Shown here: piece by piece, positions 12,256 through 62,616 of the stretch
Numbering within the stretch: position 1 is the stretch's first letter
How the letters are laid out: every line of letters starts with the position of its first letter
DNA from: Azolla caroliniana
Lineage: Eukaryota > Plantae > Polypodiophyta
Reading direction: 5' to 3'
DNA: 64,000 nt
NCBI GenBank assembly: GCA_043228905.1
Contig: JBHGNT010000002.1
Span: forward strand, 558,001-622,000
Made by a program: the position numbers and the translations under genes
Notes under the pieces: model-generated
What the model was told of the DNA's origin: nothing
The model's database searches: none
What the model saw: only the letters and a program-made list of their open reading frames with translations

Positions 12256-13903
12256 GTAACTCTTCTATCCCGTTGTAATTTTCAGTTGGAATTGTGTAGT
12301 GAAAACATCTTATAGCTTATTTTGGAGCTTATATTTTTCTGTGGCTTGAATCATAGTTCATCTTCTGTCGTTGTAAACATATCGTTCTAAAGGAAGAATT
12401 TCATTGCTCATATCTCTTCTATTTAGTATTATAGTTGTGCCTATTAAAATTAGGCGTTGTGGTTCACTGGAGTTTTACCTTTCTCCTGTTTCTATGAAAA
12501 TGGCTGCAATATTAATTAAAATTTATGCATTGTTGCAGTAAAACGAAAATCAAAGATTGATTCTCTTTCACCAAGCGTGCATATTGTTCCACTAATTTAG
12601 ATACATGCTTTCCATTATTTATAGAATGTCGTATTGGCATGTTTACTCTTCTCATGCATCCACATTCCAACAAAATGTGATAAAGTGCTAGAGAACATCC
12701 AATGGCTACTCTTGAGGTTATTGTTTGGCCTTATGCTTAACAAACTATGTGCATCCTAGTTATGGATATTACCTAGATCAAAGAGTCTTGATTTTGTATG
12801 ACAAAAATATATCTACTTTGGAATTGATCAAAGTGTGAAAGTGATGGTATTTGAACATATGTTGACACACATGGCAATATATAATGTTTACTTTGGTATT
12901 GATACTATAAGTTCTGTTGGAAAATCTGATTGTGTTGAAGATGCATTAGTAACTCACAAGTTGAATATATTTTACACTAGTAACATGAAAGGGTCTAAAT
13001 GCTAAATTTTTGTAAGAACCAATCATTGTGTTGCTCTCAAACATGCATTTCTAGACAAGCATCTTCATTTTTTTATTTTTTTGTAGAGTTGTGTGTTGTA
13101 AGCATAACCATAGTCATAGTTGTGGGCTAATTTTGTAAGGATGAAGGGTGAGGATTGAATTATCTCAATACTATGGTTGGAGATAACTTTAGAGTGTTTC
13201 ATCACTTGGTTACTTTATATTAAAAAAGCAATCAAGTGCGAAATACACACAAGGGCCTAAGGTTTGAGCCTATATAAGAGGGATAACTACCTTCATGAAG
13301 GGGCATGTCTTTTCTTTATTGTTTTGAGATAGAGACTCCTTTGTCAAACCCAAGGTATGATCAACCGATCACCCCCTAGCGAAGGTGAGAGACGGATCCA
13401 AGTTCCCTACTGGTGTGTCTATGGACATAGAGTCATAGTTATGCTCGAAACATATTGACAATACTTTGAAAGGTTCAACTCATGGTAGAAGTATGGTTAG
13501 AATGTGATCCTCCACACACAATGTCATATGGCATTCTAATTTGGACCTTCATAATTGTGTTTGGTCTATGCTTTCACATGTGCGCAAATAATGTGTATGG
13601 GTGTAAAATTGGTTTATAATGTATTACCTCAATGTTAATTTACCATTTATGTTCCGTGCATAATAAAGTCCCAACATGTTTTATTATTTACAATTGGTTC
13701 ATTCATTGAAAAGTGTACTCATAGGAAGATGTAATCAACTCATTCAATATAGCTCAACGCAAAAGGGATTAATAAGACACCATTACATAGATATGCTACT
13801 CATATTATTAACTGATAAAAGGCTTCCCAACTTTATTGCCTTTATTATGAGTTGAGAAGAGCTAGCAAGATGACAGTCCCAATAATATTCTAGAACTTTT
13901 GTT

Positions 13904-15150
13904 CTAACAATAGTGATAGCAATAGCAATGGCGTTGAATATGGTGGAAATGACAAGCACCGGTTTCAGCATGCTCAACAACTTTGCATTGGTATTCACAA
14001 CCACGACGATTGAGACATTGTCCACTGTAGGTCTTACTCTTGTAGCCGCATAGACCTTCAGGCATGACCACTTCCTCATCCTCAACGTCGACGTTCTTAG
14101 CATTTTCTTGAGTTGCAACCTCCCTATTGCCCGTTACTGCATCATTGTGTTCTTCACCACCAAATGTAAATTAGACAATGATCATTATTGAGACTTTGAT
14201 GGAATATCCAAAATTTTCATTGATATCTCATGGTTATACATGACATAAAAAAGTAAACAACAACATTGATGTTCCAATTGATGACATGTAACGATATAAT
14301 AAATTAATAGATATAGAGCATCTAACAAGTTTAAAGAGTCTGTTCATTTGATTTCATGGTTAGATGCTCTTTAAGCTTGTTAGATGCTCTATATCTATTA
14401 ATTTACTATGTCATAAAAAAGGACATGGGAATATCCAAAATTTTCATTGATATCTCATGGTTATACATGACATAAAAAAGTAAACAACAACATTGATGTT
14501 CCAATTGATGACATGTAACGACATAATAAATTAATAGATATAGAGCATCTAACAAGTTTAAAGAGTCTGTTCATTTGATTTCATGGTTAGATGCTCTTTA
14601 AGCTTGTTAGATGCTCTATATCTATTAATTTACTATGTCATAAAAAAGGACATGGGAATGGCAAAATACAACAAGACTTCTTATGCAAAAAGATCAATCT
14701 TGTCTTTTTATAGCTTTCTTTTTGTTTAGTGCTTAACTATACGGGATTCTATTAGTATATATTGTAAGAGGTAATTGTAATACCTAGCAAAACATGTGTA
14801 TAAAATAATTAAGGAGCTCATGATGAAGTTTACTGAAGTTGATAACTTGTGCCGAATTGAATATCCTTGCCAACTGTTACTATAACCCATTCATCATAGT
14901 GAATATTACTACCACACCCTAATATTGTTTGACACCTTAATTAATTATAAGATGTCTTTGATTAGTATTAAAAATATTTGTGTGACAACTTTTCCTTACC
15001 CACAGTTAATAAAGATGAATATTACTAGTACTTTCGTTTACATTTTGAAAGGTTTTCTTTACCTTCAATTGCCTCACTGATTTGCCATGTCCAACTCAAA
15101 GCAAGCAACACCACCATAACCACAACAAAGGTATAAGTGTGTCCTGCCAT
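13904..15150 (-). CDS. Secreted plant defensin (gamma-thionin/CSalphabeta) precursor: signal peptide, acidic prodomain, 8-Cys mature domain
   Basis: Exon 1 (15150..15063) encodes MAGHTYTFVVVMVVLLALSWTWQISEAIE and ends at a phase-1 GT donor. Exon 2 (~14151..13904) reads EHNDAVTGNREVATQENAKNVDVEDEEVVMPEG-LCGYKSKTYSGQCLNRRGCEYQCKVVEHAETGACHFHHIQRHCYCYHYC*. Cys spacing C-X10-C-X5-C-X3-C-X10-C-X8-C-X-C-X3-C is the canonical plant defensin pattern. This frame differs from track ORF 13783..14118. Confidence 0.9.
14201..14659. repeat. Near-exact 227-bp tandem duplication in the defensin intron; each copy contains a ~45-bp inverted repeat (MITE-like fold-back)
   Basis: GGAATATCCAAAATTTTCATTG begins at 14201 and again at 14428. 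Each unit contains TAAATTAATAGATATAGAGCATCTAACAAG and its reverse complement CTTGTTAGATGCTCTATATCTATTAATTTA. Confidence 0.9.
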
Positions 15151-15228
15151 TAATGAAATCGATGATAATGAGAACTATGCGTTATATAAATATTGCTTGA
15201 AGGTGATGAGAAGAGTGTCTTGGGTTGT

Positions 15229-15240
15229 TCTTATATAGAG
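15229..15240 (-). promoter_or_regulatory. TATA box of the defensin gene
   Basis: CTCTATATAAGA on the - strand, ~80 bp upstream of the ATG at 15150. Confidence 0.7.
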
Positions 15241-15829
15241 GGAAAAAACACAATGAGTACTACGCAAATTAAGTGCCAACCATGTTACAAGGGTCCGTTG
15301 AATATACATTAATACAAGTATGTGTAACACACTTTTCCTTGGGATGTATAGATAGTGCGTTTTATGTGGATTCTCATGGTATTGTTGGGAGATGGGACTC
15401 AAAATTGCCACCATTGAGTCGAAAAAGAAGAAAAGTGTATCACTAACATCCCCACTAACCTTAAAGATATGCTCTTTATATTTACATTTATCGTCAACAA
15501 CATGTTTTGATCTAAAGGCCTTCTTCTATGATGGAAGGCACTAATTTGTTCATTTGGGCCCTTTTTATACTCATTACCATCAATGTTGTAATACTAAAAT
15601 GTACTCTACACTCTCACTACATGTGAGTGTAGATATAGGTTTTAGTGTTAGTTCAAGAGCATCTCATTTACGAGAGATTCAAGGTCAAGGAAAGCTGCAA
15701 TACATCACAATATTATTGGAATTCAATAGATATATTGATACTAAAACGGAATGAAATTGTATGTGTCAATTTCAAAAACTATACATACAAAGTGCAAGGA
15801 TTTGAGGTGCAATTTCAAACACAAGCACA

Positions 15830-17047: not shown

Positions 17048-20000
17048 CTTGTGCAACGACATAGAAACAGCCATACGCAGGTACAGAACAGAAACGAATG
17101 CTTCTTGATCTTCCGCATAGACGACATTGTCTTCAACATCTGGTATCAGAGCTTGCACAGTATTCGGTTCCTCAACCCGTTGTCGGCCGTCGTCTCAGCC
17201 TGCACAGCATTCGGTTTCCAGCGTCATTCGAAGAAGAGAGAAGAAGAAGAGAAACGAGGCTTGCATCTCATCGCGTTAGATCATCTTCACTTGGAGTAAG
17301 CCAGCAGGTTGTACTCTGTCTCTTGTGATCGTAACCGCTCGAGGTGAAATCCCCTGTGAAACATTGACACGATCGTGCTCCACTCGGTTAAACGGCATCC
17401 GAAAAGGTCATTAAACGCTGCTCGCCGCTCGTTGTAACCACTCGGTGCAGATCGGTCTCAAGACAACAACCCAAATTCGTGCTTCATCTGGCTGATCGAC
17501 ATTCGGGAGGATCAGTTGGATCCGTCTCTCTCGTTGCTGCAGTCAACCGAAGCAGAATCGGTCCAAATAATCGGTATTCGGCATATATATCCGAAGCGAA
17601 CCGGGCTCACTCCGACTCGGCAACATTCGGGAAGACCAGTCGGTTCTGTCCCTCAAGTTACCGGAGTCAATTCGAGCAAGTTCCGAAGCCGAACCGACTC
17701 GGGTTCAAATCCGACTAGAACAATATCGGGTGAGCCAACCGGCTGCACTCCAACAAGGTTCGTAGTCAACTCCGAACCGAGCTTCGTCAACCGAAACCGA
17801 ATTTGATGGCATCAACATCCGGCTCGTCAGAAATGAGTCTACGAAAGTTCGATGGATCGAACTTCAACTTCTGGAAGGAGCAAATGCAAGACTATCTCAT
17901 AGTCAAGGGACAAATCGATCCCATCGAAAATGAAGAACCTCCAGAAGGATACAAACCAATTGAGTGGCAGAAGCTGGACAGAATCGTCCGCGCCACGATT
18001 CGGATGCACCTATCGGAATCGGTATACTTTACGGTGCAATCGTGTACGACAGCATTCGAACTGTGGAAAACACTGTCGGACACTTACGAAAAGAAGGTCG
18101 CCGCAACGAAGATGTTTCTGATCCGGCGCCTCTACAACTTGCGGATGAAAGAATCCGATTCGGTTCAAGCACACCTCAATGAGTACGAAAGCATAAGCTC
18201 CCAAATCTCGTCACAGGGGACGGCAATCGAGGATGAACTCAGAGCAATGATACTCATGAGCAGCCTTCCCTCATCATGGGAAACTTTCGTCACAACCGTG
18301 TGCAACGCGTCAACCACGGCTGTTAAGTACTCCGAAGTCACGAGCGCAATCCTGACCGAAGCAGCTCGGAGAAAGTCTTTCGCCAAAGACTCAACAGACG
18401 ACGCTTACGTAGTACAAGGTTCGACAGACCGATCGAACATACGAGGAAGAGATTCCTCACGACCGCCGAACAATCAGCGAAGACGGAGCCAGTCACGGGA
18501 TAACCGAATCTGCAACTATTGCAAGAAACCCGGACACATCAAAGCCGACTGCCGCGCACTCAAGAACAAGAACAACAAGAAGAGTGGCCGACATGAGGAG
18601 ATCAATTACGTCAGCTTCTCAGCTGATGTACTACCGGACGACCCGAATATACTATCAATCGAAAATCCAGTCGGATCAGAAGTTCTACTCACGACTGAAG
18701 AATCGAGCACATGGCTGTTAGATTCGGGCGCGTCATTTCACGTGACTCCTCATCGATCCCAATTTCGGCAATATACGATCCGTCACTCCGACTCAGTTCG
18801 AGTCGGCAACTCACAACACTGTGACATCATCGGAATCGGCACAGTAGTGCTCAACCTTGCAGGTGGCTCTACACTTGTACTCCACAATGTCCGACATGTA
18901 CCCGAGCTCTCAAGGCCATTGATCTCAGTCGGACAACTAGATGAAGACGGCATTCGTGCCGGCTTTTCTTCGGGAGGGTGGACACTCCACAGGGGGAACC
19001 TCCTGCTTGCTAGAGGACCCAAGATACACTCACTGTATCCGTTACATGTTACGCTCAGAGAGGGTAACCTGTTTTTGGTGGATATTCCTGTGTCATCACT
19101 ATGGCACCGAAGATTAGGACACCTCAGCAAGGCCGGCATCGCGCACCTATCTAGAGCCGGATACATCCCCAAACTCTCCTTCTCGGACCATCAATTCTGC
19201 GAGCATTGTCAGTATGGCAAACAAGCAGCCGCATCACACCCGACATCAGCACCAAGAGAAACGAGACCTCTCGATTTAGTCCATTCGGACGTCTGTGGCC
19301 CAATGCCGCATCAGTCTCTAGGCGGTGCATCTTACTTCGTCACTTTTATTGACGATTCGACTCGAAAGGTGTGGGCTTATCCAATTCGCACCAAAGATCG
19401 GGTCTTCTCGATCTTCACCGATTGGCTCGCTATGGTAGAAAATCAAACCGACCGAAAGCTGAAATGCTTTCGGACAGACAATGGGGGAGAGTTTAAATCC
19501 GAAGAATTCGTCAAATTCTGCTGACAACGCGGCATCCGACGTGAATTTACGGCACCACACAGTCCGGAGCAAAACGGGATTGCAGAACGAATGAATCGGA
19601 CAATCCAAGAACAGATAGTTTCCATGCTCCAACACTCCGGACTGTCGGATGGCTTCTGGGCAGAGGCTCTACTCACGGCAGTACACATAATCAATATGTC
19701 GCCAAGTAGACCTCTAGGACTTCAAATTCCTCAGGAACTATGGATCGGCAGTAAGCCGAATTACGACAAGCTGAGGATCTTCGGATGCGAGGCGTACGCC
19801 CTCATTCCGAAAGATGATCGCCGAAAACTTGCACCTCGGTCCAGGAAATGCATTTTCCTCGGATATGGATCCGACGGCGAAATGGGATACCGACTCTGGG
19901 ACCCCGAACGCAGACAAATCGTTCGAAGTTCGGACGTTGTGTTCAACGAGTCGGCTATGAATCCATCAGTCGAAAAACCGATCGAAGTCCGAAGGGTAAC

Positions 20001-22183
20001 ATTCTCCGATGTGCCGACCCTTCAAGAAGGCCCCGCTCTCAACACACGGTCAGCTTCACGGGTAGCTGAACCTTACACTACCGACTCGGACAACTCCGAC
20101 TCGGCACAGCAGAACAATCCGCTTTCGGACCATCCGACCGTGATACCCGATGCGACCAGTCCAATCATACTTCGACGATCCGAGAGACTGTCGCAACCTC
20201 CGGAGAGGTATTCTCCTGGAATTTTCTTCACCGACGCCGGCGAACCGACGTCTTACGAAGAAGCATCGACTTCTGTCGATTCAGCCACCTGGCATCTGGC
20301 GATGGAGTCGGAAATGCACTCCATTCGGGCAAACAAAACTTGGGATTTGGTCGAATTACCTCAGAACCGACGTGCTCTTCCTTGCAAGTGGGTTTATCGA
20401 CTAAAAGAGACGTCTGATTCGACCACCCCAAAGTACAAGGCCAGATTAGTTGCGAAGGGCTTCCGACAAGAATATGGCGTCGACTTCGACGAGATTTTTT
20501 CACCAGTGGTGAAAATGACAACCCTCCGTTTTCTACTCGGCGTAGTGGCAGCCGACAACTTGGAGCTGATTCAGCTAGATGTCAAAACAGCATTCCTCCA
20601 TGGTGATCTTGAAGAGGAAATTTATATGGAGCAGCCAAAAGGCTTCGTGGCAACTGGCCAAGAACATCTAGTCTGCCGACTCAGGAAGAGTCTATACGGC
20701 CTCAAACAGGCACCACGACAATGGTACAAGAAGTTCGACGACTTCATCCAATCGATCGGCTTCTCCAAAAGCGATGAGGACCATTGTCTCTTCACCAACA
20801 CAGCTCAAGATGGATCACCCATCTTCCTCATCATTTACGTGGACGACATGCTAATTTCTGGACGCCACGCGGGCGAACTTGCCGATCTCATTCGGCAACT
20901 GCGGTTGAAGTTTGCCATGAAGGACCTCGGTCCGGCACGACACATACTCGGCATGAAAATTAGTCGGCATCGCGATAAACGACATCTTTTTTTGTCTCAG
21001 ACCGACTATATCCGACGTGTCTTGGAACGCTTCAACATGCAATCAGCCAAATCTGCTTCAACCCCGCTCCCAATGAATCTTCGGCTCTCTCAGCGAGACT
21101 GCCCGACATCCGGCCCGGAGGGGGAAGATATGAAGTCGGTACCGTATGCACCGGCAGTCGGCTCCCTTATGTACCTGATGGTCGCGACACGGCCTGATAT
21201 CTCTCATGCCGTAGGAGTCGTCAGCAGATTTATGCACAATCCTGGCCGATCGCATTGGAACGCAGTCAAGCATGTGTTCAGATATCTGGCTGGCACAAAA
21301 GAACACGGCATTCTTTTCGGTCCGAACCGAACCTCAGGCGTAGTCGGTTACACCGACTCGGATTTCGCCGGCTGTATAGACAGTCGGAAATCAACAACCG
21401 GATACTGCTTCAAATTCGGCAATGGAGCAATCTCGTGGAAGTCGAAACTTCAGGAGTGCACAGCAACCTCAACGACCGAAGCAGAATATGTAGCTGCGTC
21501 CGACGCAGCAAAAGAAGCTTTGTGGCTCGGTCGGCTGGCGCACACGTTTCGACAAGTCGACCATGACTCGGCTCCAGTTGTCTACAGCGACAGTCAAGGT
21601 GCTGTTGCCTTGTCGAAAAATCCGGTTCACCACAACGCCTCCAAACATATCGACGTTCGATATCACTTCGTTCGGGACTGCGTCATCTCAGGGAAAATCG
21701 GTCTAGAGAAAATATCCACAACCGACAATGTCGCAGATGGAATGACCAAGTGTCTTTCGGCAGACCGTTTTCGGTCTCTTCGGCATCAGATGGGCGTAAC
21801 GACAAACCAGCCCGGTTAGAGCCGGACACAGAGCAGGATGGTTCCCGACAACCGACATCAGTTCCTTAATGATCGGCTTCAACTGCTCCGACCCGACCAG
21901 TTCGGTCTTCTGCCTTCGGACCCTGCCGACTCGAACAAAGCTGATATGTCCGAGAACCTAAGTCTATACCTGTAATCTCAGATAACCCATGTATACGCCC
22001 ATTACGGGGGAGTGTCGAATACATGTGTATAATGGACGTATTCACATTATCCCGTTTTGGCCATTTATGTAATTAGCATAAAGGGTAGTTGCCCTAAGTC
22101 GGTCACTATTTATAGTGACCTTGTAACCTTTTTGTAAGGTTGGATGTTGTATTATTCCTTTATGAAATAAGAAGTCTTTTGTG

Positions 22184-22221
<38 letters not shown>

Positions 22222-22312
22222 CTTGTGCAACGACATAGAAACAGCCATACGCAGGTACAGAACAGAAACGAATGCTTCTTGATCTTCCGCATAGACGACA
22301 TTGTCTTCAACA
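16839..22312 (+). mobile_element. Full-length, very recent Ty1/Copia LTR retrotransposon (Tnt1/Tork-like)
   Basis: 300-bp LTRs at 16839..17138 and 22013..22312 (TG..CA), identical by eye including the (CT)17 tract. 5-bp TSD CTTCC (16834-16838 / 22313-22317). PBS TGGTATCAGAGC (tRNA-iMet) at 17141. PPT ACGGGGGAG at 22004-22012. Confidence 0.97.
17806..21819 (+). pseudogene. Copia gag-pol polyprotein (Gag, CCHC knuckle, PR, IN, RT, RNase H) with one in-frame TGA at 19522-19524
   Basis: Motifs CNYCKKPGHIKADC, LLDSGAS, HRRLGH..CEHC, SDVCGP, TDNGGEF, QNGIAERMNR, KARLVAKG, QLDVKTAF, YVDDML, YTDSD and KHIDVRYH. ORFs 17803..19524 and 19591..21819 are in the same frame. Confidence 0.95.
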
Positions 22313-23633
22313 CTTCCAAGTGGTGTTTTCTTGGAAATACATGATACTATTTATGCACATACCTCACTAAGAAATCTTCTTGCATTTGCAAATGTGCGAT
22401 GCAATGGATCCCACCTCATGACATGGGAACAAGATGGGAAAGAGACAATGCGAGTTGTCAATGTCAAATATTACCCAAGTTATTGATGAGTTAGAAGTCT
22501 TACCAAACCAATTGTATTGTTTCAACCTTAAAGCGCCGAAGATCTGCATGGCTTCATTTACCCACTATTCCAATATTTCCTCGAAGGTCAATACTAATAT
22601 CATGGATCTCTGGCATGATCGTGGCAATACAATGATTAGGAGAATGATCAATAATGTTCAAGATCTACCTTTAAAGTTGGAATACTTGAATTGAGTTAAA
22701 ACTCGTTTTTGTGTTCCATGTGCATAAGGAAAGCTTGTGATTCGTCCTTCCTAGCACACAGAACCGGATGAATCACCAAATTTTTTGGAGCGTATACATG
22801 GTGATATCCATGGACCAATGCACCCTCCTTCTAGACCATTTTATTACTTCATAGGACTCAAAGATGTTTCATTGCGTTTTTCTCACGTCACACTTCTTTC
22901 TACTTGCAACATGGTGTTGCCTCAACTCCTCATCCTTATCATCAAGTTGCGTGCTCAATTCCCAGATTTTCCAATTAAGTCGATTCGGATGGAAAACATT
23001 GCCAAGTTTACGTCAACAACCTTTATTCGCTATTACGAATCTATCGTAATTGCTCGATTGATTTGTCTCAAATCGATTTTGCCTAGTTCAACATGGGGAC
23101 ATGCAACGCAACTTCTCCGATTACGGCCGTCATCATGTCAACAACTTTCATGAACGAATCAGATCCTCAAACTATTCAAGTTCAGCAAAATCATCTCCTT
23201 TTTGGGATAAATGGAAAGAAGTTATTCAAGTTGAGCTAAATAGTCTTCTCAAACGAGAAGTTTTTGGTAAAATTCAAGAGACGCCTATTGGTCACACACC
23301 CATTGTCTATCGTTGGGTTTTTGTGTGGGACCATAATGATAAAGGAGAAGTTATCCGTTATAAGACAAGGTTTGTTGCTCAAGGTTTCAAGCGACGATTT
23401 GGTATTGATTATACTGATACATATTGTCCGGTTATGGATGCAACAAGTTTTCGTTGGTCGATTCATTTTACTGTTCAACGAAGTCTTCATATGCGTCTCA
23501 TGGATGTGGTTACAACTTATCTTTATGGTGATTTGGATAAAGATATATACATGAAGATACCTGAAGAACTTTGCAAATCTATGCAGCTTGGAAAATTTCT
23601 AAATCCATCGATCAAGTTACGTAAGGCATTTAT
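22313..23633 (+). mobile_element. Old degenerate Copia (Bianca-like lineage) PR-IN-RT remnant; host of the young Copia
   Basis: Motifs LWHDR, FCVPCA*GKL, FLERIHGDIHGPMHPPSRPF, LRAQFPDFPIKSIRMEN, YKTRFVAQGF and LMDVVTTYLYG, with stops and deletions. Removing the young Copia and one TSD restores TVTIQLP|SGVFLEIHDT across 16820-16838 / 22318. Confidence 0.85.
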
Positions 23634-24573
23634 CCAATTAATGACTTTCTCCGATCATGCCCCAGTTGTGTTACAAGTTAATGATGGGAAAAAACGTAAG
23701 CAACAAGGGAGAATAAAGATTCCACTGGAATTGTTTACAGAAGCCATAATTACTGAACAACTTATGTATATATGGAGACAAACTTTATTGCAAACTGGAT
23801 ATGTGGAAGATAATGTGGCCTCGGCAATATTACATATTAATAGTTTCTTAATCTCTTCGGCACATGGGAAAAAGGAAAGATATACACAGAAAATTATGAG
23901 TATGCATTGTGCCTTGACATCGTTGCAACATTTTCAAGAAAGGGATCCATTGTGTGAATGGATGGCAAATGCGTTACATAATGCAAAATGGGAATTAAGA
24001 AATATTAAGGACAACATTGTACAATTTCAATATCAAGCCTTTGCTTCAAAATGGACACAACTAGGTGATAGAGTAAAAATGTTTTTTTCCCGAGTTTCAC
24101 TAAAATGATCGGCAGTAGGGATTAAACAACTAAGGAGAGAAGATGGCTCCTTAACGGAAGATGAGTCAGAAATTGTACAAATTCCTACGACTTACTATAC
24201 TAAATTGTTGTCTGTTGGAGTTGCTATTGAATCTGTTCACACAAGTAGGAAATGTGTGTTGGGCAAAATTAAGGCTAAAGACACAAATGAAATGAAGGTG
24301 GCATTAATGAACCCCTGTGACATTATGGAAATACATAATGCACTTAGAGCTTTAAGTCTTATGTCTTGTCCAGTGGATGATGGAATTGCACATTTTTTCC
24401 TCAAATATTGAGAATATATTGAGGAAGACTTAACGAAAGCTTATCACAGAATTTTTTACTCTGGGTACATGCCTCGTAGTATGGTAGTTGGCTTGATTTA
24501 TTTAATACCTAAGGTTGAAGGTATATCAGATGATATTAGAAAATGGAGACCAATAGCTTTGCTGAATACAATA

Positions 24574-31479: not shown

Positions 31480-32755
31480 TCAATAAGTGTGGTTGTTAAG
31501 GGTGTTTCACCTAATGGGCGTGTTTTGTATTTTGAGGGCCTAGACAACAATAAATTGCAATCTTATACCTTTCATTGCAGTTATCTACAGGACTTGCGAA
31601 GTGCACCAATCATAGTGGTTGCTAAAACTGGAAAGAAATGGATCCTTGATCCTTATCCGTCAATTGCTCATATGTGTGATATCCTGTTGTTATACGCAAA
31701 AGATCATGTTGCAAGATTAACATGGGATCCATGGGGTTGGCTTTGGTCACACTCCTTGGGGGAAAAGATCGTAAAGGTCCCATTCTTTCAGTACTCAGTA
31801 AAACTTGGAAGATCATTACTGCTCTCTCGGAATGTAACGATACCAACAGCTTAGAAACATTGGACCAATTGGGGTGTCTCAACTTTGCATTTGAGAACCT
31901 ACTGGAAATGGATCTGGTCATTCAAGGGGCCAACTAAATTTATTCTCTTTCGATGGTTATTAGTGCATATGGCACTACCAGTTGGTCATTCATTGAAAGG
32001 GAATGTAGCACCCAATTTGCCACAATGTGGCTTTTGCCATGAACCTCAGGAGACTACCAATCATGTCCTATGGTCTTGTCCCTTTTCTCAACAAGTATGG
32101 AAGAAAGTTATTTCTTTATTCCTAACAATCAATGTTGGTTGCCTATTCTCATGGGGATCAGCGATCTGGGGAGTATTACATTCTAGGTTGATGTTGTATA
32201 AGGCAAACGATGTTCATGAGGCAATGACAATACATAATAGAAGATTGATATTAGTTAGTCCCTTCCAACAACCTCGAAAGCGGGTGCGACATGTCCATAT
32301 TTGGAAAACAGTGACCACAATAACATTATGGGCATTATGGAAATATCGATGTAATCGACTTTATGATGCGGTAGACATTCATGTCTTGGATGTGTTGTTT
32401 GAGATATGGGAGAACTTGCTGGCAATAGTCCGTGGCTAGTATGATAATATGCAGGGTTCCCCAGATATTGTGAACAAGAAAAGGAAAAAGCTTCTTCACT
32501 TATGGAAAAAGTTGCCCCTATTTACAATGTCAACTCAAGAGCCTCAATGGCAATATCGACTTCCATGGACTTTTTCTTGAATATCAACAAATGTAAACAT
32601 CTTCTACAAAGTTCGATATTTGGTCCTAGGATTATTCTACATCATTGTATAAGAAAAGTTGTAACCTCCTTGCCAGCTAGGTTCAAGTTGTAGCCTTCGA
32701 GCATTTTTTCTTAATACTATTGAAGAAAATCATTTAAAAAGAAAAATTAAAAAGA
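31480..32755 (+). mobile_element. 3' fragment of a second, diverged LINE related to the first (C-terminal domain and zf-RVT)
   Basis: Motifs WILDP, RLTWDPW, VPFFQYSVKLGR, CGFCHEPQET..HVLWSC and LWALWKYRC are colinear with 30350-31300; A-rich end near 32740. Confidence 0.85.
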
Positions 32756-50295: not shown

Positions 50296-53200
50296 CTAAA
50301 ACTCAAAATCGTCATTTTCCTCCTCTAAAGAAAACTTTCCAGAATGGACCAACTCTTGTAGTCTGGTCGCAGTAGCATCGGAGAGTCCAAGAAGGTACTG
50401 CATACGAGAAAGCCTCTCTGGGGTTGGATTGCTTTTATAAAATAAGCAAAAAAGGTCAAACACTTCATCTTCAATAGACCAAGATAAGGGTTCTGAAGGA
50501 CAAGCCTTATCGCAAGCTATAAGATCATTGAGAGATCCAACCTGCCAAATTACATTTAAGAATCAATGGGTTTGAGAATAATCAATTATTTTAAAGCCTT
50601 ACATCCAGACTAATAGAAGCATCTGGAAAATTACAGAAAATGCTTTATAAGTTTCATATAAATATGCTATGTCAATATGCGTTATGAAAACATGCTGAAA
50701 TCCTGATAATGCTTACCACTCCATCCTTGTTTTTCTGTCTTAGAAGCGAAACCGCTTGCACCAATGTATTGCCAAGTCTCTGCTTAGCAATGTCTTGGAC
50801 TAAAGATTTCACTTTATCCAAATCTAACCCAAGATCAGAAGGATATTTCTCATATACATCCTCATCATTGAAATCACCAGCCCCAGATGAGAAAATTCCA
50901 TCAAGAATCTTCTTAAATAACTGCTGTCGGACATCAGTCGATATCATGGTCTCGACATCGACTCCTGCTTCTCGAAGCTCTCTTACTTCTTTGATGTCCA
51001 ATCTCCCAGCATTAACTGCAGTCTCTATAGCACCACGCATTTTTGTGTTCACGATATTGCTAATAACCTTTTGAGCAGCGTCAGATGGTAATCCAAGTTG
51101 TTTCTGCAGCTCATTAAGTTGTTGTACCCTGCCCTTAGAAAGCTGACCATCTGCTAAGATTATCTCTGCTTGTTGACGGAAAGCTTGCTCTGCAAAACCT
51201 TTGTGTACATCAGCTACCTCTTTAGAAGTTAGACCCAATAGACTACCCAGTTGTCCTAGCCTTAAAAATTCATTCGTGTCTTTCTTCACAACAATCTGAG
51301 TACCCATAGGCATTCCACTGCTCTCTCCAGATATGCAAAAGAGTAAATATAGACGATATAGATCCATTCGTTCACGAAGCTCCAGATCATCTTTGAGAGT
51401 GATCTCAGTCTGCACTTTCTTCCCTGAAGTGTCAAGGTCACTTTTTGGCCTAGTTTTCCTCAGAGTTTGAAGCTCTTGCCACTCATCATCGTCAGCTTTT
51501 TCTTCCCCTTTTTCTGGTTCAGCCACTGTTGGAACCTCAACTTTTTCTTCAGTGATTTCACCAAATGCAGCCCGGATATCTGTCAACAACTCAGTGACTA
51601 CTAGTGTATTAAATGCTACTAACTTTCTCAGCTCCTTGGCAGTCTCCATACGACTTCCAGCACCTCTAGCCCTCTTGACATAAGTTACGAACACTGCGCG
51701 TACCTGCAAAAATAGAAAGAGAAATTTATCATACCAAATGCAATATACAAACCAAGCAATTCAAGGTAAAAACAAGAGAAAAATATAATAGCTATACAAT
51801 GCCATTTCTTGATGACATACAGAGCATGAAATTCATGAAAGAAACTTACAACTTTCCCTGCAATGGCTAAAGCTGCTTCTTTAGTCAATCTCAAGCCTTT
51901 AACACTCTTTTGCACAGCCGCCTTCATATCTGCATCGTATCCATCAACGCCAGCAGCAATAGCATTGTCAATCGACTGCAGGTTGATAAGGGCAAGTGGA
52001 GAGCATTAGCTGCAATTGAAGACTCAAATTTTCAGGTAACTACTATACTAAGAAAAAGACACACCTTCTCAAAGATCCTGCCACAGAGAGTTGCATGAGC
52101 GGCATCAACTGTCTCTTTAGAAAGACATAGTAATATATGTAATCGTCTCAGTGCCTTTACATCATCTTCACTAAGATCACCATCAGAGAGACATTGCTGA
52201 AGCTTCTGTCGATAGATATCTACCAATGCCAATAAGAAACAAAACTGATCACTCACTAATGTGAAAATTTTAATAGTCAAAATTCACCTCAACATTAAAA
52301 TCAAGACCGACCTTCATGGACCTCCTTAGCCTTTTCAGGGTCAAAATGGATACTATCACAAAGGTTTTGCAGATAAGCAGCTTTGCTGGAAGCCTGGTCT
52401 AATTCTCCACCCGCAACTGCCGCCTGAGCAAGTCTTTTCCTATAAACCTTGATAGTAACATCTAGCGTAATGTCTTCAGCCTCACGATTGCCCAAAGCAA
52501 ACAAATTTTTGAGTTTTGCAAGAGACGCAATCTAGGCAAGATATGAGCAAAAGGGATATTACATAATAGTAATAGTAAACATGAACCATACTTATGAAAA
52601 GGATTAGATTTGCCACATTATTATTGCAGCATCAATCACCTCATCTTCCTCAAGCTGGCCACTTGACAAAGCTTCAGTTAGATATGCACGATACAGTTGT
52701 TTGAGCTCATCCATCTTTCTCTCATCATCAAATATCCCACCTGCTTGCACATATCCAACATTGTTCATTACCTACCATTGTTTTCTCATGTTTTGCTAAA
52801 AACAAAGATTGCAGAGCCTAATAGAACATGAGATTTTCTGATTATTATCAGCTACCTATGATAGATACAGATCCAATTCCGGGAGGAAGACTCGATGGAT
52901 CTACCTTCGTGGAGACAGCAGCAAGAGAATCCGTGTATGCTAGTACATTTTCTAACACTTCAACAACTTTCCTAGAATCCCTGTAAACAAATGCAAATAA
53001 AAAGAAAACTAGTTCACTTTTCTTTAGAGTACGACAAACATTTTACCAACTCTAACATCTTCTCACTTAGCTGTTGTACAAGCATTGTAATCAGAAATCA
53101 GAAATGCAAGTCATAAATTATGAAACTCACTTCGCCCTTGTACGAGCCTTAAGTGTCTCAACCGCAGATAAAAGGCGTTCTTCAAGTTGTTCCCGCAAAT

Positions 53201-56200
53201 ACGTTCTAAACAAATCAGATGCAACCTGGTTTTGCATAAAATTTGAATCCCTTAACTCAGAAGATTGAAGCAAGTCTTCAAATATTATAATGAGTCAAGC
53301 ATGACGTATAGAATAAAATTCAAAAATACAATAGTAAAGTAAAGTAAGAACTATTGGCAATTCCTACAAGCTCATGTCTCCAGCATGAAGAAGCTAAAGA
53401 TGCACAAGAGACCCGTATCCTTAATTTGGAATGATCAAAACCTGGTTCATGCTCATAAAAAGCAGCAAAACGACGCCACCTTTCGCACATCCTTTGGGGG
53501 TTTATCCTTTCTGATAAAACCCCAACGAAATTGCATATAACAGACAAATCCCCCAAGAAATTGTTCCAGATTTTCCATAGGTTTTACACATAAATTTCAT
53601 GCACCTTGATTCTCAACATGTCAAATGGCATTGGTCATGCTAATTCAACACCGTAATCATTGGTAAGTTAAATGCAGGTAAGGACAATCTCTGCTTCTCC
53701 ATCCCATTGTCTTATTCCCTGCCATGTACGCTTTTCCTAATAACCTGTTGCAAGTCATCCATGTCGATTCACAGATATTCCTAAGCCAAATCCTCTGCTT
53801 TATAATCTATCCAGTAGAGTAATGAATTAAGCTTCCTACATATTCATGCTATTTTCAGAACTTTGTCTATTATCCCTCAATCTCAGCCACTTATGCTCCA
53901 ATTCTTCAATACTTCATTCTGCTATGACTTACTGAATTATTATAAGAGCATAATACAACAGTGGCTTTGGAGTCATGCATTTGGATTATCAGATTTCAGG
54001 TTTTTCAGCATCCATTGTATCTAGAAGTCAAAATTGGATGCATTGCATGATTCAGAAATAGTAGAAGTAAGAGAAGCATTGAATGATTCAGAAATAATAT
54101 ACACAAGTATGCAAACTACAAAAGACATTTATATAGCACAATATGCACATATATAACTAGGACATAACATATACTCCATAAAACAATGCTTTGAGCATAT
54201 TTTGTACATCATTTCATTGCATATTTAAGTGAATATTAATGGCATGGTCAAATGTTTTAATAGCATTAAATGCTTTGTTGGACAATGTTCATCTTATAAT
54301 GTGCCTATATATATAAATTACCTCATCCGACAATGCCAACTTCAATTGTGCCTTCCTCAAGCTTATGAATTCCTCTACATCAATTTCTGCTTAGAGCGTC
54401 AATCAAAATCAATCAAACCAACCAATGCAGAAAGCAAGGGATAAGATGGCAACCAATCATGATTACCAGAACCGAGAGTCGATAGCTGGGTTCTGAACAG
54501 CCTTTGGGCATTGTCCCGGCATGCTATTTCCACCTTATAAAACCCACATCTTTCAGTGCTAAAATAGATATATCATAATGCAAGATAATGAAGGACAAAA
54601 TCTTACACCTAGGTTACATAAACCTAGACAAAGTCAACTTCTCAGAATCCTTCCTTACTTGTGAATCTGTTAACCGAAATACACGTTTCCATGGTAAATA
54701 GAACTTTGATGCCTCACCGAAAACGAGATTGGAAACATAGACCAATTTCTGGAAAGCCTGCATGAAGAACACCAAATACGATAATTGACAATGATTAGAG
54801 AGGTTATGAAGGCATGATAAGAGAATCCCAGGCCACTCTTTTCATTCAACAGAAGCCCCTTACCCGGCGCTCTTGAACGGCGGTATCTTTATCCCCAGTC
54901 TCCAAGCGCTGTCTAAATATCCTCCTCCCGATCTACCATCAGCAGTACTAGAAGTGAGTGTGATTACAGATAACATAATTCTGCATTAAATTCAGTAACT
55001 TATTACTTCGATGTGTACAGCTGCTGCATCAGGATCCTCAATCCCCAAGGCATTTTTGAACTTAACAATTCTATCCACTTCATCTCCTTTCAGATCATCA
55101 TTACCTGAAGGTATAACATCAGTCACATACCTGCAGTGAACATATAATGACTTAGTGTTCAAAGTTTGTATGCAGACAATTATAATGTGTTTCTATGGAG
55201 CCTAGCCAAACATGTTTTCCATATATCTTGGATAATGGAAGCTTCATGAGCATGAGCATAAGCTACATGTTTGAAGCTGCAAAAAAAGAAGTAAGAAAAA
55301 ACAATTGTAAAAGAGACACTTGACAGAATTTTTCTCAAGGCCTACATTTTGCATGCGTCGTGAATCATGTCACATAACTTTGGTGTGGTCAACTTACTTA
55401 ACAAGGCAATACAATTTGGAAACATCAAAAACCCTATTTAGTGAGATTCGTATCTATCACTAGTTTTCTATTTATTGTTTTTGTTTTGGATGATGGCTTA
55501 TTCAAAAAAAAATATCAACTATGATAAATCACGGTATGGAACTCTCTCATATGATTCATCATTATATACATCTTATTTTAGTATAATATTATACCCAGGC
55601 TTAACAAAAGAAAATTAGATAATGAACATGCTATGCTCCTATCCTTTCATATCTGCCCACAGTTGTCCACATCGAATAGCTATATCATGAAATAAATAGA
55701 ACAAGACCAACAGTTGATTGCAAGAGTTAGTGAGAACTGTGCAAATTTGAAAAGAAAGGACTGAAGTTTTGAAAACATATGTATTTGAATATATCTCTTC
55801 ATTACTGCAATCCTGCATTATGAATGTTTCGGCCACACCACATACCTATCATATAGATCTTTCAACTCCGCATTAAGCAGCTCATCGTGTTTGCTCACGC
55901 CAAACCTGTAAGAGGAGAAAATTCAACTGAGTATACATCGAATGCTTATAGCTGAAACACATTGGATTTTCAGAGTAAATGGCGGTGCTCTTCAATTGGA
56001 TTTTCTAAGGTGAATTTCTATCTCCATTCTTGTGTAATCAAATCACCCAGTATAAGGTGCCTTTCTACCTAAAATAAAAGATAACAAAAAATGGATACGC
56101 AATTTTAAGCTTGTGTACCCAATTCGTTATTTACATGATTTACTATTAATGCTAAGCTAGTATAGAATCCATTTCTCTGTGTTAGTGCCATTCTAATATG

Positions 56201-57547
56201 CATGGTAATTCTGCAGTGATGGAAGATACTTCGCAGAACTTTGATGGAATCAGTATTGGAAGCACTAATAATGTATATGCAAAGGTTTAGTGAAAACCCA
56301 TTCCATATAGGATGAATTCATGTTTTCTGAAATGACCCAAGTGCAGGCCAAGAGGATGAATCAATTAAAAGTTTTACGAGCATTTGTTAAACCAAACAGC
56401 ATCACAAGACATTAGAATGATATCTTGAAATCCTACATTTAACAATCATGTTCATTCTCCATTTGATGAAATTCATATATTTTATCCAGATACTTAATAC
56501 AAAATCATGTTTTATCCACATACTCAATGTGAAAATTAGCAATCATACACATTACACATTGAATAAAGTCCATAACTTACACAGAGATTTGATTTTAGCC
56601 ATTCCAATCTAGTTGAATCACGTTATATTGCAATGTATTCTGCAAGTCGGTGGAATGCATACACTTAAATGTTGAGATGCATTCTATAGAGGATAGACTT
56701 CATGTTTTCCATATGCTGGAGTTCAATGAAAAATCAATGATGCCGTTTTATATCCAAAGAGTCAATGTGCAGAAGGAATCTCTGTCATTCAACTATTATA
56801 CACTGGAAAAGATGCATGATTTTTATATGTATATGTTCAATGTAGAACCATATGAATCTTTCTATTTAACTCCAGAAATGCCAAAGACTCAATATTGCAT
56901 GAAGACTCTTTTTACATCAAATGAATAAGAATATATAAATACCTTTTAACAATGGCATCAACCTCTTCGCGCTGAAGAGAGGTTGGATCATCCAGCTTTG
57001 CAACAGCATTATGAAGCTTCACAGCAGCAATGGCCGGAGCAGAAGAATTGACAAGGTAAGCAGTCGCAATGCCAGCAGCACCAAGGGCTACAGAGCCACC
57101 GATCGCAGCAATTCTTGTTTTACCTTTCGTATAACTGGTTCCAAGAGCATATCCTGCAGCAAGAGCTCCTGCAACAATGGCTACACAGGTGGCATATCGA
57201 GCAGTTGCAGGTAATCCTTGCAGAACTTGATGAACCCCTGAGAGCTCCCTCTCTCCACCAAACGCGTTTCGCAAGCCACTTCGAACCGAAACGTCCGCAC
57301 TTCTGCTTCTGCTCGGAACATCTTCCGAACCGTTTCCGATGCTCAGGGATGCGCCATCGCCATCTGATGATACCGCGCAGCAACGATAGCGAAGTGAAGG
57401 AGAGAGATCACTTCTTCTGCTGCTGCTGCTACCGTTTCTTGCTGTTGAATGGGAGGGGAGACGAGTATAGATCGGGGTGAGAGGGAGAAGGCCTGCAGAC
57501 GAAGGAAGCGATGGCGAGGCTGGCTTGAGAGAAGGACAAGGAAGCAT
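50296..57547 (-). CDS. TIC110: Chloroplast inner-envelope translocon component Tic110, about 15 exons
   Basis: Ser-rich transit peptide, two N-terminal hydrophobic segments (AIVAGALAAGYALG; IGGSVALGAAGIATAYLV), then LGIEDPDAAAVHIEIGRRIFRQRLETGD, FQKLVYVSNLVFG, FALGNREAE, LKDDLELRERMDLY, FRQQAEIILADGQL and a C-terminal EEENDDFEF*. Confidence 0.96.
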
Positions 57548-59993: not shown

Positions 59994-61652
59994 TTAAGCC
60001 TTCACTTTAATATCCCCCCTCCGCCAAACGGGAAGCACTTCCATTCCACCATCTCTATTTTCAGCCATATTACAAACTTGCTTTCCTTGCTTTCCCTTTT
60101 GGTTCTTCCTCTTCATTCTTTGCTCAAGCCTAACACTTCTTGATTCTTGAACACGTTGCTCCATCTCTAAAGCCCGAGAAAAATCCCAAACTCTAACTAT
60201 TTGCTCTAATCCAGCACTAACTATCCGATCTGCTCCAACATCAACACTATATAAGCTTTGATTAGAACAAAATAGCATCCGTTGGGGCCTTTCAGCATCG
60301 GTCGAAATAACTGCCCAACCCATTTGATGATGACGATTATTTTTAGATTTCAATGATGAATTCAGAGGTTCACGACCTCTTTTGACGATGATCTTTCTAA
60401 CGTCTATCATGGCAAGAGAGCCATCTGCTGATGACGAGACAAGCCAGGGGTCCTCAAAAGCCAAGGCATACACTGCACCAGAATGAGGATGCCAAAAGGC
60501 TACTGGTTCATTATTACTTGCTTCCTCAGTGTTTTCATACATCTTAATGATACCATCCTCGCCCCCGGAAAACAAAAAATGACCGGATCGGCTACATTCC
60601 ACAGCATATACATGACCTTCATGAGCACTCCTGCGAACTCGTGAGCATTCCCCAGTCTCCACATCCCAACTATACAAATCGCTCCCCGATGCAGAAAACA
60701 ACCTTTGGCTTCTTAGCGAAATCGACCAAACCCAATCGCAGTGATTCAATGTTCTAATGCATGAGAATGTGTTGCAATCCCATACCTTCACAGTCATGTC
60801 CCATGAGCCACTACAAATCCTCGTCCCATTCAAACTAAGGCTTGTAATGGGCCCTTCGTGACCAACAAGTTCAATCATCGAGGAGTTTTCCCTTCCTCTC
60901 TCTTTGATGATTCCAGCAACATCAAACCTATGCAAAAGATTTGGAATCTCACGCCAGATTCTGATTCGAGAATCTGTACCACCTACAGCGAGGAAGGACA
61001 TATCCACGGCTATTGCTCGTAGAGAGTCGCCACCAAGAGGGCGAGAGCAAGCCATAAGAGAAGATTCTTCTAGATCCCATATTCTTAGAATCGAATCATA
61101 ACCGGCTGTAAAGACAAGATTGGCTGATGGGAGCATACGGACACACCGGATTGCTTTTGTGTGGCCAACCATCATATTATTCTGAGATCGACCGAGGAAA
61201 GCTTTACTTCTTGCTTCTCTGGCAAGGTATAAATCTTTCCATGCTTTTTCTGAAAGCATAGGAGACAAATCTTTAGATGAATTAATTGAAGCAGAAGAAA
61301 AATGAGATGAAGAAGGTGCAGGACTCCCCCATCTTTCACAATAGAAATTCTTCCATCCATGGCTATCTGAAGAGACCCCTCGGAATAGAGAACAAACACA
61401 TGATATCATGCTTAACTCTCTTGCATCTAGATGCTTGAAAACTTCAGCAATAAGTGCAGGGGGTAAATCCAAGAAGGTGCTTCTAGAAGGTTCTGCATTC
61501 TGCTCTGGTATAGGTACATGTGGAACCATCCCTGCCATATCTGAACAAGAAGAAGTGGATGAGGACGAGGACGAGGAGGATCCCTCATACCAAGCATCAT
61601 CTGCTATCCCAGCAGCAGACTGACCCAAAGTATTATTATTTTTTAATGCCAT
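59994..61652 (-). CDS. F-box/WD40-repeat protein (SEL-10/FBXW-like architecture), single coding exon
   Basis: F-box FLDLPPALIAEVFKHLDARELSMISCVC, followed by GH..WD repeats (GHTKAIRC..RIWD, GHEGPITS..VKVWD, AHEGHVYA, VRVWD). First ATG at 61652; the track start at 61712 is a GTG. Probable 5'UTR intron from donor ~62246 to acceptor ~61694. Confidence 0.92.
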   Translation of the reverse strand: MALKNNNTLGQSAAGIADDAWYEGSSSSSSSSTSSCSDMAGMVPHVPIPEQNAEPSRSTFLDLPPALIAEVFKHLDARELSMISCVCSLFRGVSSDSHGWKNFYCERWGSPAPSSSHFSSASINSSKDLSPMLSEKAWKDLYLAREARSKAFLGRSQNNMMVGHTKAIRCVRMLPSANLVFTAGYDSILRIWDLEESSLMACSRPLGGDSLRAIAVDMSFLAVGGTDSRIRIWREIPNLLHRFDVAGIIKERGRENSSMIELVGHEGPITSLSLNGTRICSGSWDMTVKVWDCNTFSCIRTLNHCDWVWSISLRSQRLFSASGSDLYSWDVETGECSRVRRSAHEGHVYAVECSRSGHFLFSGGEDGIIKMYENTEEASNNEPVAFWHPHSGAVYALAFEDPWLVSSSADGSLAMIDVRKIIVKRGREPLNSSLKSKNNRHHQMGWAVISTDAERPQRMLFCSNQSLYSVDVGADRIVSAGLEQIVRVWDFSRALEMEQRVQESRSVRLEQRMKRKNQKGKQGKQVCNMAENRDGGMEVLPVWRRGDIKVKA

Positions 61653-62616
61653 CAAATCAAACCCTAAATAGTGATCCTGTCGTAAAACCTTTCCTGCACC
61701 GGTTCTGTTCACAAAAATATCTAATCAGAATTCTTCATAGATTCTTTCAAAAGGAGCTTCCTGCATAGATTCTTTCCAAGAAACGCTAAAATGTTTGTGC
61801 ATAGGTTATGTCAAGAACTGTAAATGACACTCTTCATAAAAACTAAAAGGTTCGTGCATAGATTCTGTTAAAAACCCTAAACCGAGTGTATCTCCATGGA
61901 TTCTGTGAAAATAACCTTAACGAATTCTTGCACGGGTTCTAGTAAAAATAACATACAACTCTCGAGAGGATACTGATAGATTCTGTTCCACGTCATAAAA
62001 TGGCATGCATTCTGTCCTGTTCAGATTCTTTCAAGACAAACTGTGCCAGTCTTTCAGCAAAAACTCGTTTAAAAATCTAACTAAATCGATATAGACTTCT
62101 GCACGAATTCCTGACCTACACAGGCTTTCTGCACGAATTCCTGACCTGCACAGGCTTTCTGCACGGATCCGGAAAGGGAACATAGAAATCTAACCGTAAA
62201 ACAGAAAAGAGAGGTCCTTCCATGGTATGGAGTGCAGGAGACTCACCGGGATGTTCGAGATGTGCAGTGCAGGGAGGGAAATGGGGCGTCCTTCTGAATC
62301 CTGTGGGGGGTGGGAGTAAGGATTTCAAGGGAGGGGAGGGGGTTCACAGATGGATGATGATGATGATGATGATGATGCCGCCATGGATGCAGCAGCAAAA
62401 GCTATGCTACCATCATTCCATTGTCACACATCTCTCGCATGTGACAAGGAATATCATCCAGCCACACATTTTTGGGGATAGTAAAAACTCTCATGTGTTC
62501 ATTCATACATATGTACATACATATGTACATACATACATACATACAGACATGCACAATTAATTAATTCATTGCACAAGGTTATTGAAAATCCATCGGCCCT
62601 TTAACCTTATAAGATT

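Follow-up and report, generated by a model that had tools for sequence, protein, structure and literature searches.

Structure of the defensin gene

The window analysed here is a stretch of 64,000 nucleotides (nt) from the fern Azolla caroliniana (GenBank assembly GCA_043228905.1, contig JBHGNT010000002.1, positions 558,001 to 622,000 of the forward strand). It contains a defensin gene whose product consists of a signal peptide, an acidic spacer and an eight-Cys defensin domain that ends the protein. An earlier interpretation of the letters alone (hereafter the sequence-only reading) had described a signal-peptide exon, an acidic stretch and an eight-Cys defensin ending at its last Cys in the range 13904-15150. 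Translation and spliced contigs bore out this layout, and the range proved to be the exact limits of a two-exon gene on the minus strand (Table 1). No second defensin copy, paralogue or other defensin-like open reading frame (ORF) was found in the window by tblastn.

The intron splits a Glu codon, so that exon 1 ends with IE and one base of that codon. The splice donor (GAAG/GTAAAG, with its GT at 15062/15061) and acceptor (GGTGAAG/AACAC) are both also present in L001, a homologous contig from ENA. The open frame of exon 2 starts right after a TAA and contains a single AG acceptor, at 14153/14152. AATAAA occurs 3′ of the stop codon at 13846 and 13837. The tandem duplication within the intron is near-perfect, and its 46-nt inverted repeats are separated by a 28-nt loop, resembling a miniature inverted-repeat transposable element or a hairpin. 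L001 carries a single 227-nt unit, and the duplication is therefore recent.

Table 1. Positions of the defensin gene and its parts in the window.
Feature	Position	Strand	Basis
Exon 1, 88 nt, including the ATG at 15150..15148; MAGHTYTFVVVMVVLLALSWTWQISEAIE plus one base	15150..15063	-	translation
Intron, GT..AG, 911 nt, phase 1	15062..14152	-	spliced contigs
Exon 2; (E)HNDAVTGNREVATQENAKNVDVEDEEVVMPEG followed by LCGYKSKTYSGQCLNRRGCEYQCKVVEHAETGACHFHHIQRHCYCYHYC and stop	14151..13907	-	translation
Acidic spacer, 5′ portion of exon 2, (E)HNDAVTGNREVATQENAKNVDVEDEEVVMPEG	14054..14151	-	translation, charge count
Junction motif V-V-M-P-E-G immediately before Leu-Cys1, candidate processing site	14054..14071	-	homologue comparison
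Defensin domain, 49 residues from the Leu preceding Cys1	13907..14053	-	Pfam, fold model
TAG stop, adjoining the last Cys codon	13906..13904	-	translation
Transcript including untranslated regions, approximate extent (contigs cannot fix the true ends)	13739..15257	-	spliced-contig coverage
227-nt unit in tandem duplication within the intron, with a 46-nt inverted repeat per unit	14201..14654	.	repeat search

Transcription and splicing

Assembled contigs of four sequencing runs from different studies (X1 to X4) were mapped onto a 1.5-kb stretch containing the gene. In a word index, the runs matched about one quarter of this stretch, which approximates the share of the exons and untranslated regions. 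Two contigs of X2, about 100% identical to the window, contained a joint from 14151 to 15063 that skips 911 nt bounded by CT..AC on the plus strand, and the same joint was present in one 634-nt contig of X4 with about 95% identity. The latter contig covers 13739-14151 and 15063-15257, and the contigs of X1 to X3 lie inside these limits. Contigs of X1 and X3 break at 14156, and their loose ends continue into exon 1 sequence. Depth over the intron was zero in X1 and X2, and X3 and X4 yielded just contigs of about 2.5x depth there. Between the X4 relative and the window, exon 2 differs by one conservative D-to-E change, the remaining differences being synonymous.

As contigs of the four runs join exon 1 to exon 2 at their exact borders, the acidic segment is retained in the mRNA. 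The sequence-only reading had named two outcomes that would speak against it, transcripts skipping the acidic segment and a silent locus. Neither was seen: no joint skipping the segment occurred among the joints in the contigs of X1 to X4, where the exon borders were joined with the segment kept, and the four runs yielded spliced contigs with empty introns, the pattern expected of cDNA. The gene is intact, spliced and transcribed.

That the locus is instead an artefact, be it a pseudogene, an ORF arising by chance or a product of incorrect splice modelling, is hardly credible. The pyrimidine tract of the acceptor is weak and the type of the runs was guessed, but several runs, which come from different studies, yielded contigs with the exact GT..AG joint, the frame is intact with the defensin under purifying selection (see below), and the annotations of three fern genomes include full-length orthologues. 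Mis-splicing and a pseudogene were rejected on the spliced contigs.

Signal peptide, acidic spacer and defensin domain

The predicted signal peptide, MAGHTYTFVVVMVVLLALSWTWQISEA, has a 13-residue hydrophobic core and the small residues S and A at positions -3 and -1 (S-x-A). The exon 1 product is identical in the homologous contigs L001 to L003, and the signal-peptide features are kept in homologues. The predicted cleavage site is followed by IE, the split Glu codon and 32 exon 2 residues, after which comes the Leu that precedes Cys1, the first Cys of the domain. The spacer thus comprises about 33 residues, with a net charge of -7 over the 32 exon 2 residues, and the distance from the hydrophobic core to Cys1 is about 41 residues by manual count. 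On inspection, the spacer contained no Cys, no N-glycosylation sequon and no dibasic pair (KR, RR, KK or RK), the last of these as the sequence-only reading had stated. An AlphaFold2 model of the exon 2 product, built on a 26-sequence alignment, gave a predicted local distance difference test score (pLDDT) of 45-56 across exon 2 residues 1-30, and the spacer is accordingly modelled as disordered.

The Gamma-thionin scan that the sequence-only reading had suggested was run on the domain by itself, which scored 33.8 bits (E 4e-8), and on the complete exon 2 product, which scored 31.8 bits; both exceed the Pfam PF00304 cut-off of 25.1 bits. The Cys spacing, C-X10-C-X5-C-X3-C-X10-C-X8-C-X1-C-X3-C, agrees with the plant defensin pattern C-X10-11-C-X3-5-C-X3-C-X9-11-C-X4-9-C-X1-C-X2-3-C (PMC11253845), and the gamma-core G-X-C-X3-9-C is present as GACHFHHIQRHC. 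Among solved sequences, the nearest to the domain include Pinus sylvestris defensins 1 and 2 (5nce, 7lns), AhAMP1, RsAFP1/2 and Art v 1. In the model, pLDDT exceeds 90 over the domain, and the strands (E) and helix (H) are arranged as beta-alpha-beta-beta (E33-37, H48-58, E63-69, E72-80). Foldseek matched the model to AhPDF1, RsAFP2, PsDef1 and OsAFP1 (2m8b, 2n2r, 5nce, 6lcq) with target-normalised template modelling scores of 0.82-0.90 and root-mean-square deviations of 0.9-1.3 Å, AhPDF1 being the top match. The domain is thus predicted to adopt the cysteine-stabilised alpha-beta fold (CS-alpha-beta) of solved plant defensins. In its mature part the protein is an ordinary plant defensin, with a net charge of +3 and a calculated isoelectric point of 8.5.

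The mature part is unusually rich in His, which accounts for 6 of its 49 residues, located in GACHFHHIQRHC and in CYCYHYC. The homologues from Ceratopteris, Adiantum and Pteridium described below retain the CHxHH motif, and the His-richness might make the charge dependent on pH or allow metals to be bound. Signalling functions are common among defensin-like proteins, and the product might serve in signalling or metal handling rather than as an antimicrobial, with the spacer as part of that biology. The merely mild cationic character (+3), the His content and the conservation of CHxHH in the clade fit such a function, as does the best fold match, AhPDF1, a zinc-tolerance defensin. We judge this unlikely, since both the sequence and its gamma-core are of the classic antifungal type, as are the closest relatives to have been characterised (the antifungal defensins PsDef1, RsAFP, AhAMP1 and HsAFP1).

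A fern clade with a conserved junction

A word-index protein search with the exon 2 product, which is of low sensitivity, retrieved a single relative, P0001. This protein sits on 12 short ENA contigs, as a gene-caller model beginning inside exon 2. The contigs L001 to L008 are collinear with the window through exon 1, intron, exon 2 and flanks, with 86-89% DNA identity. An exhaustive search of representative proteins gave 36 matches, the best of which were all from ferns (Adiantum nelumboides, Ceratopteris richardii, Pteridium aquilinum and Psilotum nudum), and a profile word search added KP509_17G078400 and KP509_17G078200 of Ceratopteris, GOP47_0005556 of Adiantum capillus-veneris and a second Pteridium transcript. 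KP509_17G078400, KP509_17G078200, GOP47_0005556 and L7F22_000905 of A. nelumboides are 49-56% identical overall, rising to about 66-76% within the defensin domain, and their database names are only "hypothetical" or "Knottins-like domain-containing protein". The Ceratopteris and Adiantum genes span 558 and 490 nt, compatible with one short intron.

Every complete fern member has a signal peptide, a Cys-free, net-anionic spacer of 26-41 amino acids (aa), and a defensin that ends the protein. Most clade members also share the junction [DE]-E-V-x-[MFY]-P-x-x-L-C, and the window gene conforms to this definition of the clade. Sequence comparison thus assigns the window gene to a clade with representatives in at least five further fern species, and the layout of the gene recurs in every complete member of the clade. 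A crude census of the distance from the hydrophobic core to Cys1 in all fetched proteins gave 29-48 aa in all complete fern members and 8-13 aa in about 55 class-I-like matches. The distance is 15-23 residues in Apiaceae and Ipomoea, and 41 residues in an unnamed UniParc protein resembling CtAMP1/DmAMP1 (P0012), which has a 35-aa version of the spacer. Asteraceae relatives carry C-terminal tails of 30-45 residues instead.

Within the spacer, conservation is highest at the junction. It reads EEVVMPEG/LC (the slash precedes Leu-Cys1) in the window, Ceratopteris and Adiantum, and VMPEG/LC is identical in P0045 of Ceratopteris and in P0002 and P0046 of Adiantum. Variants are GEV[AS][FY]P[AQ]A/LC in Pteridium, GVFPKN/LC in A. 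nelumboides (VFPKN in P0039), MVPEG in P0048 and VV[YF]P[ED]x in Apiaceae.

Among public gene models of the fern clade, errors at the 5′ end are frequent (P0004, P0003, P0040, P0002, P0001 and P0038). Some models begin at the Met of the MPEG junction, others within the signal peptide or where it ends, and P0038 (159 aa) runs through the intron; P0004, P0003 and P0040 are truncated at that Met or at the signal-peptide end.

Comparison with known precursor classes

Reviews and a survey preprint recognise two precursor classes for plant defensins, I and II, and assign anionic N-terminal prodomains to the defensins of insects and vertebrates (PMC7432377; bioRxiv 10.1101/2020.04.27.065185); the two-class background given for plants by the sequence-only reading agrees with them. 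Class I precursors (PsDef1, RsAFP2, AhAMP1, AhPDF1) share the Pfam family, eight-Cys spacing, gamma-core and predicted fold with the window gene, and likewise end at or next to the last Cys. Their core-to-Cys1 distance is 8-13 residues, whereas that of the window gene is about 41, too long for signal peptidase to release the mature domain. As more than 30 residues separate the signal peptide from Cys1, the window precursor is not of class I. The c-regions of class I signal peptides nonetheless align with the junction E-V-V-M-P-E-G/LC of the window gene, as in NQEIPTVEA/KLC, STEVAMLEE/RIC and EMMPVEA/KLC of Mangifera P0063.

Class II precursors (NaD1, PhD1/2, ZmESR6) likewise carry an anionic, poorly conserved segment of about 30 residues that opposes a cationic domain. 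Their C-terminal propeptide provides charge balance and cytoprotection (PMC3922462) and acts as a vacuolar signal (PMC3922462; PMC7432377). The segment of the window gene is N-terminal instead, with no evident vacuolar signal, and nothing follows the last Cys; because the stop codon comes directly after it, the window precursor is not of class II either.

The double role of the class II propeptide, as vacuolar signal and cytoprotectant (PMC3922462; PMC7432377), raises the question of whether the spacer serves chiefly in sorting and not in charge neutralisation. Such an N-terminal vacuolar determinant would resemble those of sporamin and aleurain. N-terminal propeptides act as vacuolar signals in other plant proteins. 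Inspection of the window spacer and of the fern homologues revealed no NPIR-like motif, however, and the sole conserved element of the spacer is located at the junction with the mature domain. A vacuolar signal of the NPIR type was rejected for the window spacer on the absence of the motif, and we give the sorting explanation as a whole little credence.

The order of signal peptide, anionic propiece and cationic defensin is that of insect and fungal cis-defensins and of vertebrate alpha-defensins. Proteases of the furin/Kex2 type, or other known proteases, process those precursors at defined sites, dibasic or other. The window gene differs in having the V-x-P-x-x-L-C junction in place of a dibasic site, and its domain groups with plant defensins. 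Any likeness to the animal and fungal precursors would be convergent, because the mature domain is plainly that of a plant defensin.

Shorter versions of the spacer are present in seed plants. In Apiaceae (the "defensin precursor" QUJ17885 of Apium graveolens; Daucus; Bupleurum kaoi E8ZB57; P0013, P0049, P0051 and P0052), EGEVV[YF]P[ED]x/LC matches the fern junction, and the "defensin-like protein 1" of Ipomoea (P0031) has an acidic stretch of 18 aa between signal peptide and Cys1. These stretches are net negative, but they comprise just 14-18 residues by predicted cut against about 33 in the window gene, and part of each may be a long signal-peptide c-region.

No description of an N-terminal propiece layout for plant defensins, and no paper on fern defensins, was found in the searched literature, subscription papers lying outside its coverage. 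The papers on Api g 7 in that literature report neither a precursor nor a mature N-terminus. The proposal of the sequence-only reading that the gene represents a distinct prepro-defensin class holds in part: the precursor fits neither class I nor class II, is conserved across ferns and is undescribed in that literature, but the shorter Apiaceae and Ipomoea stretches and the 35-aa UniParc version blur the distinction.

Evolution and charge of the precursor parts

The proportions of nonsynonymous (pN) and synonymous (pS) differences were computed between the window gene and L001, a copy of about 87% identity. The values were pN 0, pS 0.11 and pN/pS 0 for the signal peptide; pN 0.168, pS 0.214 and pN/pS 0.79 for the spacer; and pN 0.008, pS 0.209 and pN/pS 0.04 for the defensin. 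The spacer thus evolves almost neutrally between a signal peptide and a defensin that are strongly conserved. The two spacers differ by no insertion or deletion, and the terminal PEG is retained.

The spacer was net negative in 12 of the 12 proteins examined, with charges from -1 to -10, and the mature domain carried +1 to +5 in 11 of them, the exception being P0031 of Ipomoea with -1. As near-neutral sequence change is combined with a net negative charge throughout, the spacer, apart from its junction, changes as if its composition and not its sequence were constrained. Charge neutralisation by the spacer, as put forward in the sequence-only reading, is in keeping with the sign of all spacers. 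The size of the charge fits less well, as -1 to -10 stands against +1 to +5 and the value drops to -2 in the closest copy, and near-neutral evolution is a further difficulty.

Alternatively, the spacer may never be removed and may persist as an acidic, disordered N-terminal tail on a secreted defensin head, comparable to Art v 1 and the K/E-rich C-terminal tails of Asteraceae. The junction lacks a recognisable protease site, with neither a dibasic pair nor Asn or Asp, the spacer is disordered in the model, and proteins combining a defensin with a tail are common among the matches (Asteraceae, with 30-45 C-terminal aa). A permanent tail nevertheless seems rather unlikely, given that the junction is much better conserved than the remaining spacer across both ferns and Apiaceae and that the spacer, at a pN/pS of 0.79, has no evident role of its own. 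The conservation of the junction points to a recognition or processing site. Processing of the legumain type was ruled out, as the junction contains neither Asn nor Asp.

Proposed maturation and origin of the precursor

The three-part precursor is transcribed and conserved in ferns. Taken together, the observations on it are probably best explained, though by no means with certainty, by a spacer that is an N-terminal propiece, inserted in a class-I-type signal peptide and removed at V-x-P. The signal peptide would be cut after ISEA in the endoplasmic reticulum. The composition of the propiece, that is, its negative charge and disorder, would be under selection rather than its sequence, and by analogy with the class II propeptide (PMC3922462) it may prevent the cationic, His-rich defensin from doing harm or coming out of solution while it folds and is transported. 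The sequence-only reading had proposed a cut near VVMPE/G; removal would take place at the conserved V-x-P or immediately behind it, and the protease responsible would have no requirement for a pair of basic residues. A cut after Pro, or trimming to Pro, would leave the usual 1-3 residues before Cys1.

The spacer would most likely have originated where the hydrophobic core meets an old c-region of the class I type, either by insertion or because exon 2 was extended at its 5′ end. We favour this origin because the junction aligns with the class I c-region and because the intron is located 2-3 residues past the predicted signal-peptide cut, at the start of the spacer. The reverse course, in which the spacer was lost in seed plants, is also possible, and the origin is the weakest step of the argument.

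Several points weigh against the propiece explanation. We infer the cleavage of the propiece from sequence for all clade members, and the signal peptide of the window gene was judged by eye only. The near-neutral rate of the spacer is equally expected of a functionless linker. Its charge is weakly conserved, falling from -7 in the window to -2 in L001 and to -1 to -2 in Pteridium and A. nelumboides, and does not closely track the charge of the mature domain. The overlap with seed plants (Apiaceae, Ipomoea and the UniParc protein) means that the layout is not fully separate, and the link to the class I c-region is a short motif in one MAFFT alignment. As for transcription, "RNA" is a guessed label of the run type, and the case consists of the spliced contigs and the empty introns.

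A broader version of the propiece explanation can be offered only tentatively. Ferns may mature their defensins by a third plant route, in which an anionic propiece is cut at V-x-P-x-x-L-C by a dedicated non-dibasic protease, for example a post-proline protease. The layout would then be an older or parallel state of euphyllophytes, and the class I c-region and the Apiaceae spacers would be its remnants.

Textbooks give plant defensins two precursor layouts and regard anionic N-terminal propieces as typical of animals and fungi. The fern clade adds a lineage-wide third layout for plants, either as a convergent way to restrain a cationic peptide or as a clue to the evolution of class I signal peptides. 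The V-x-P before Cys1 is a concrete candidate processing site that could lead to a plant protease for peptide maturation. Natural pro-forms could help the expression of defensins in crops, where phytotoxicity is a problem. As long as cleavage and activity are only predicted, the practical importance is modest. The comparison also flags internal-Met start errors in the fern gene models of this clade.

Other features of the window

Copia-type long terminal repeat (LTR) retrotransposon ORFs were found at 17803-24108 on the plus strand, with gag, beta-barrel and integrase at 17803-19524, RVT_2 at 19591-21819 and a second RVT_2 fragment at 23101-24108. They are located in a block of higher GC content (0.45-0.49) than elsewhere in the window (0.34-0.40). 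A zf-RVT-domain ORF at 31885-32439 on the plus strand is probably a fragment of a non-LTR retroelement. Exons of Tic110, of the chloroplast inner-envelope translocon, occupy 50672-57547 on the minus strand, the N-terminal portion of the profile matching 56912-57547 and the C-terminal end 50672-51709. An intronless ORF of 572 aa at 59994-61712, also on the minus strand, encodes an F-box and WD40-repeat protein.

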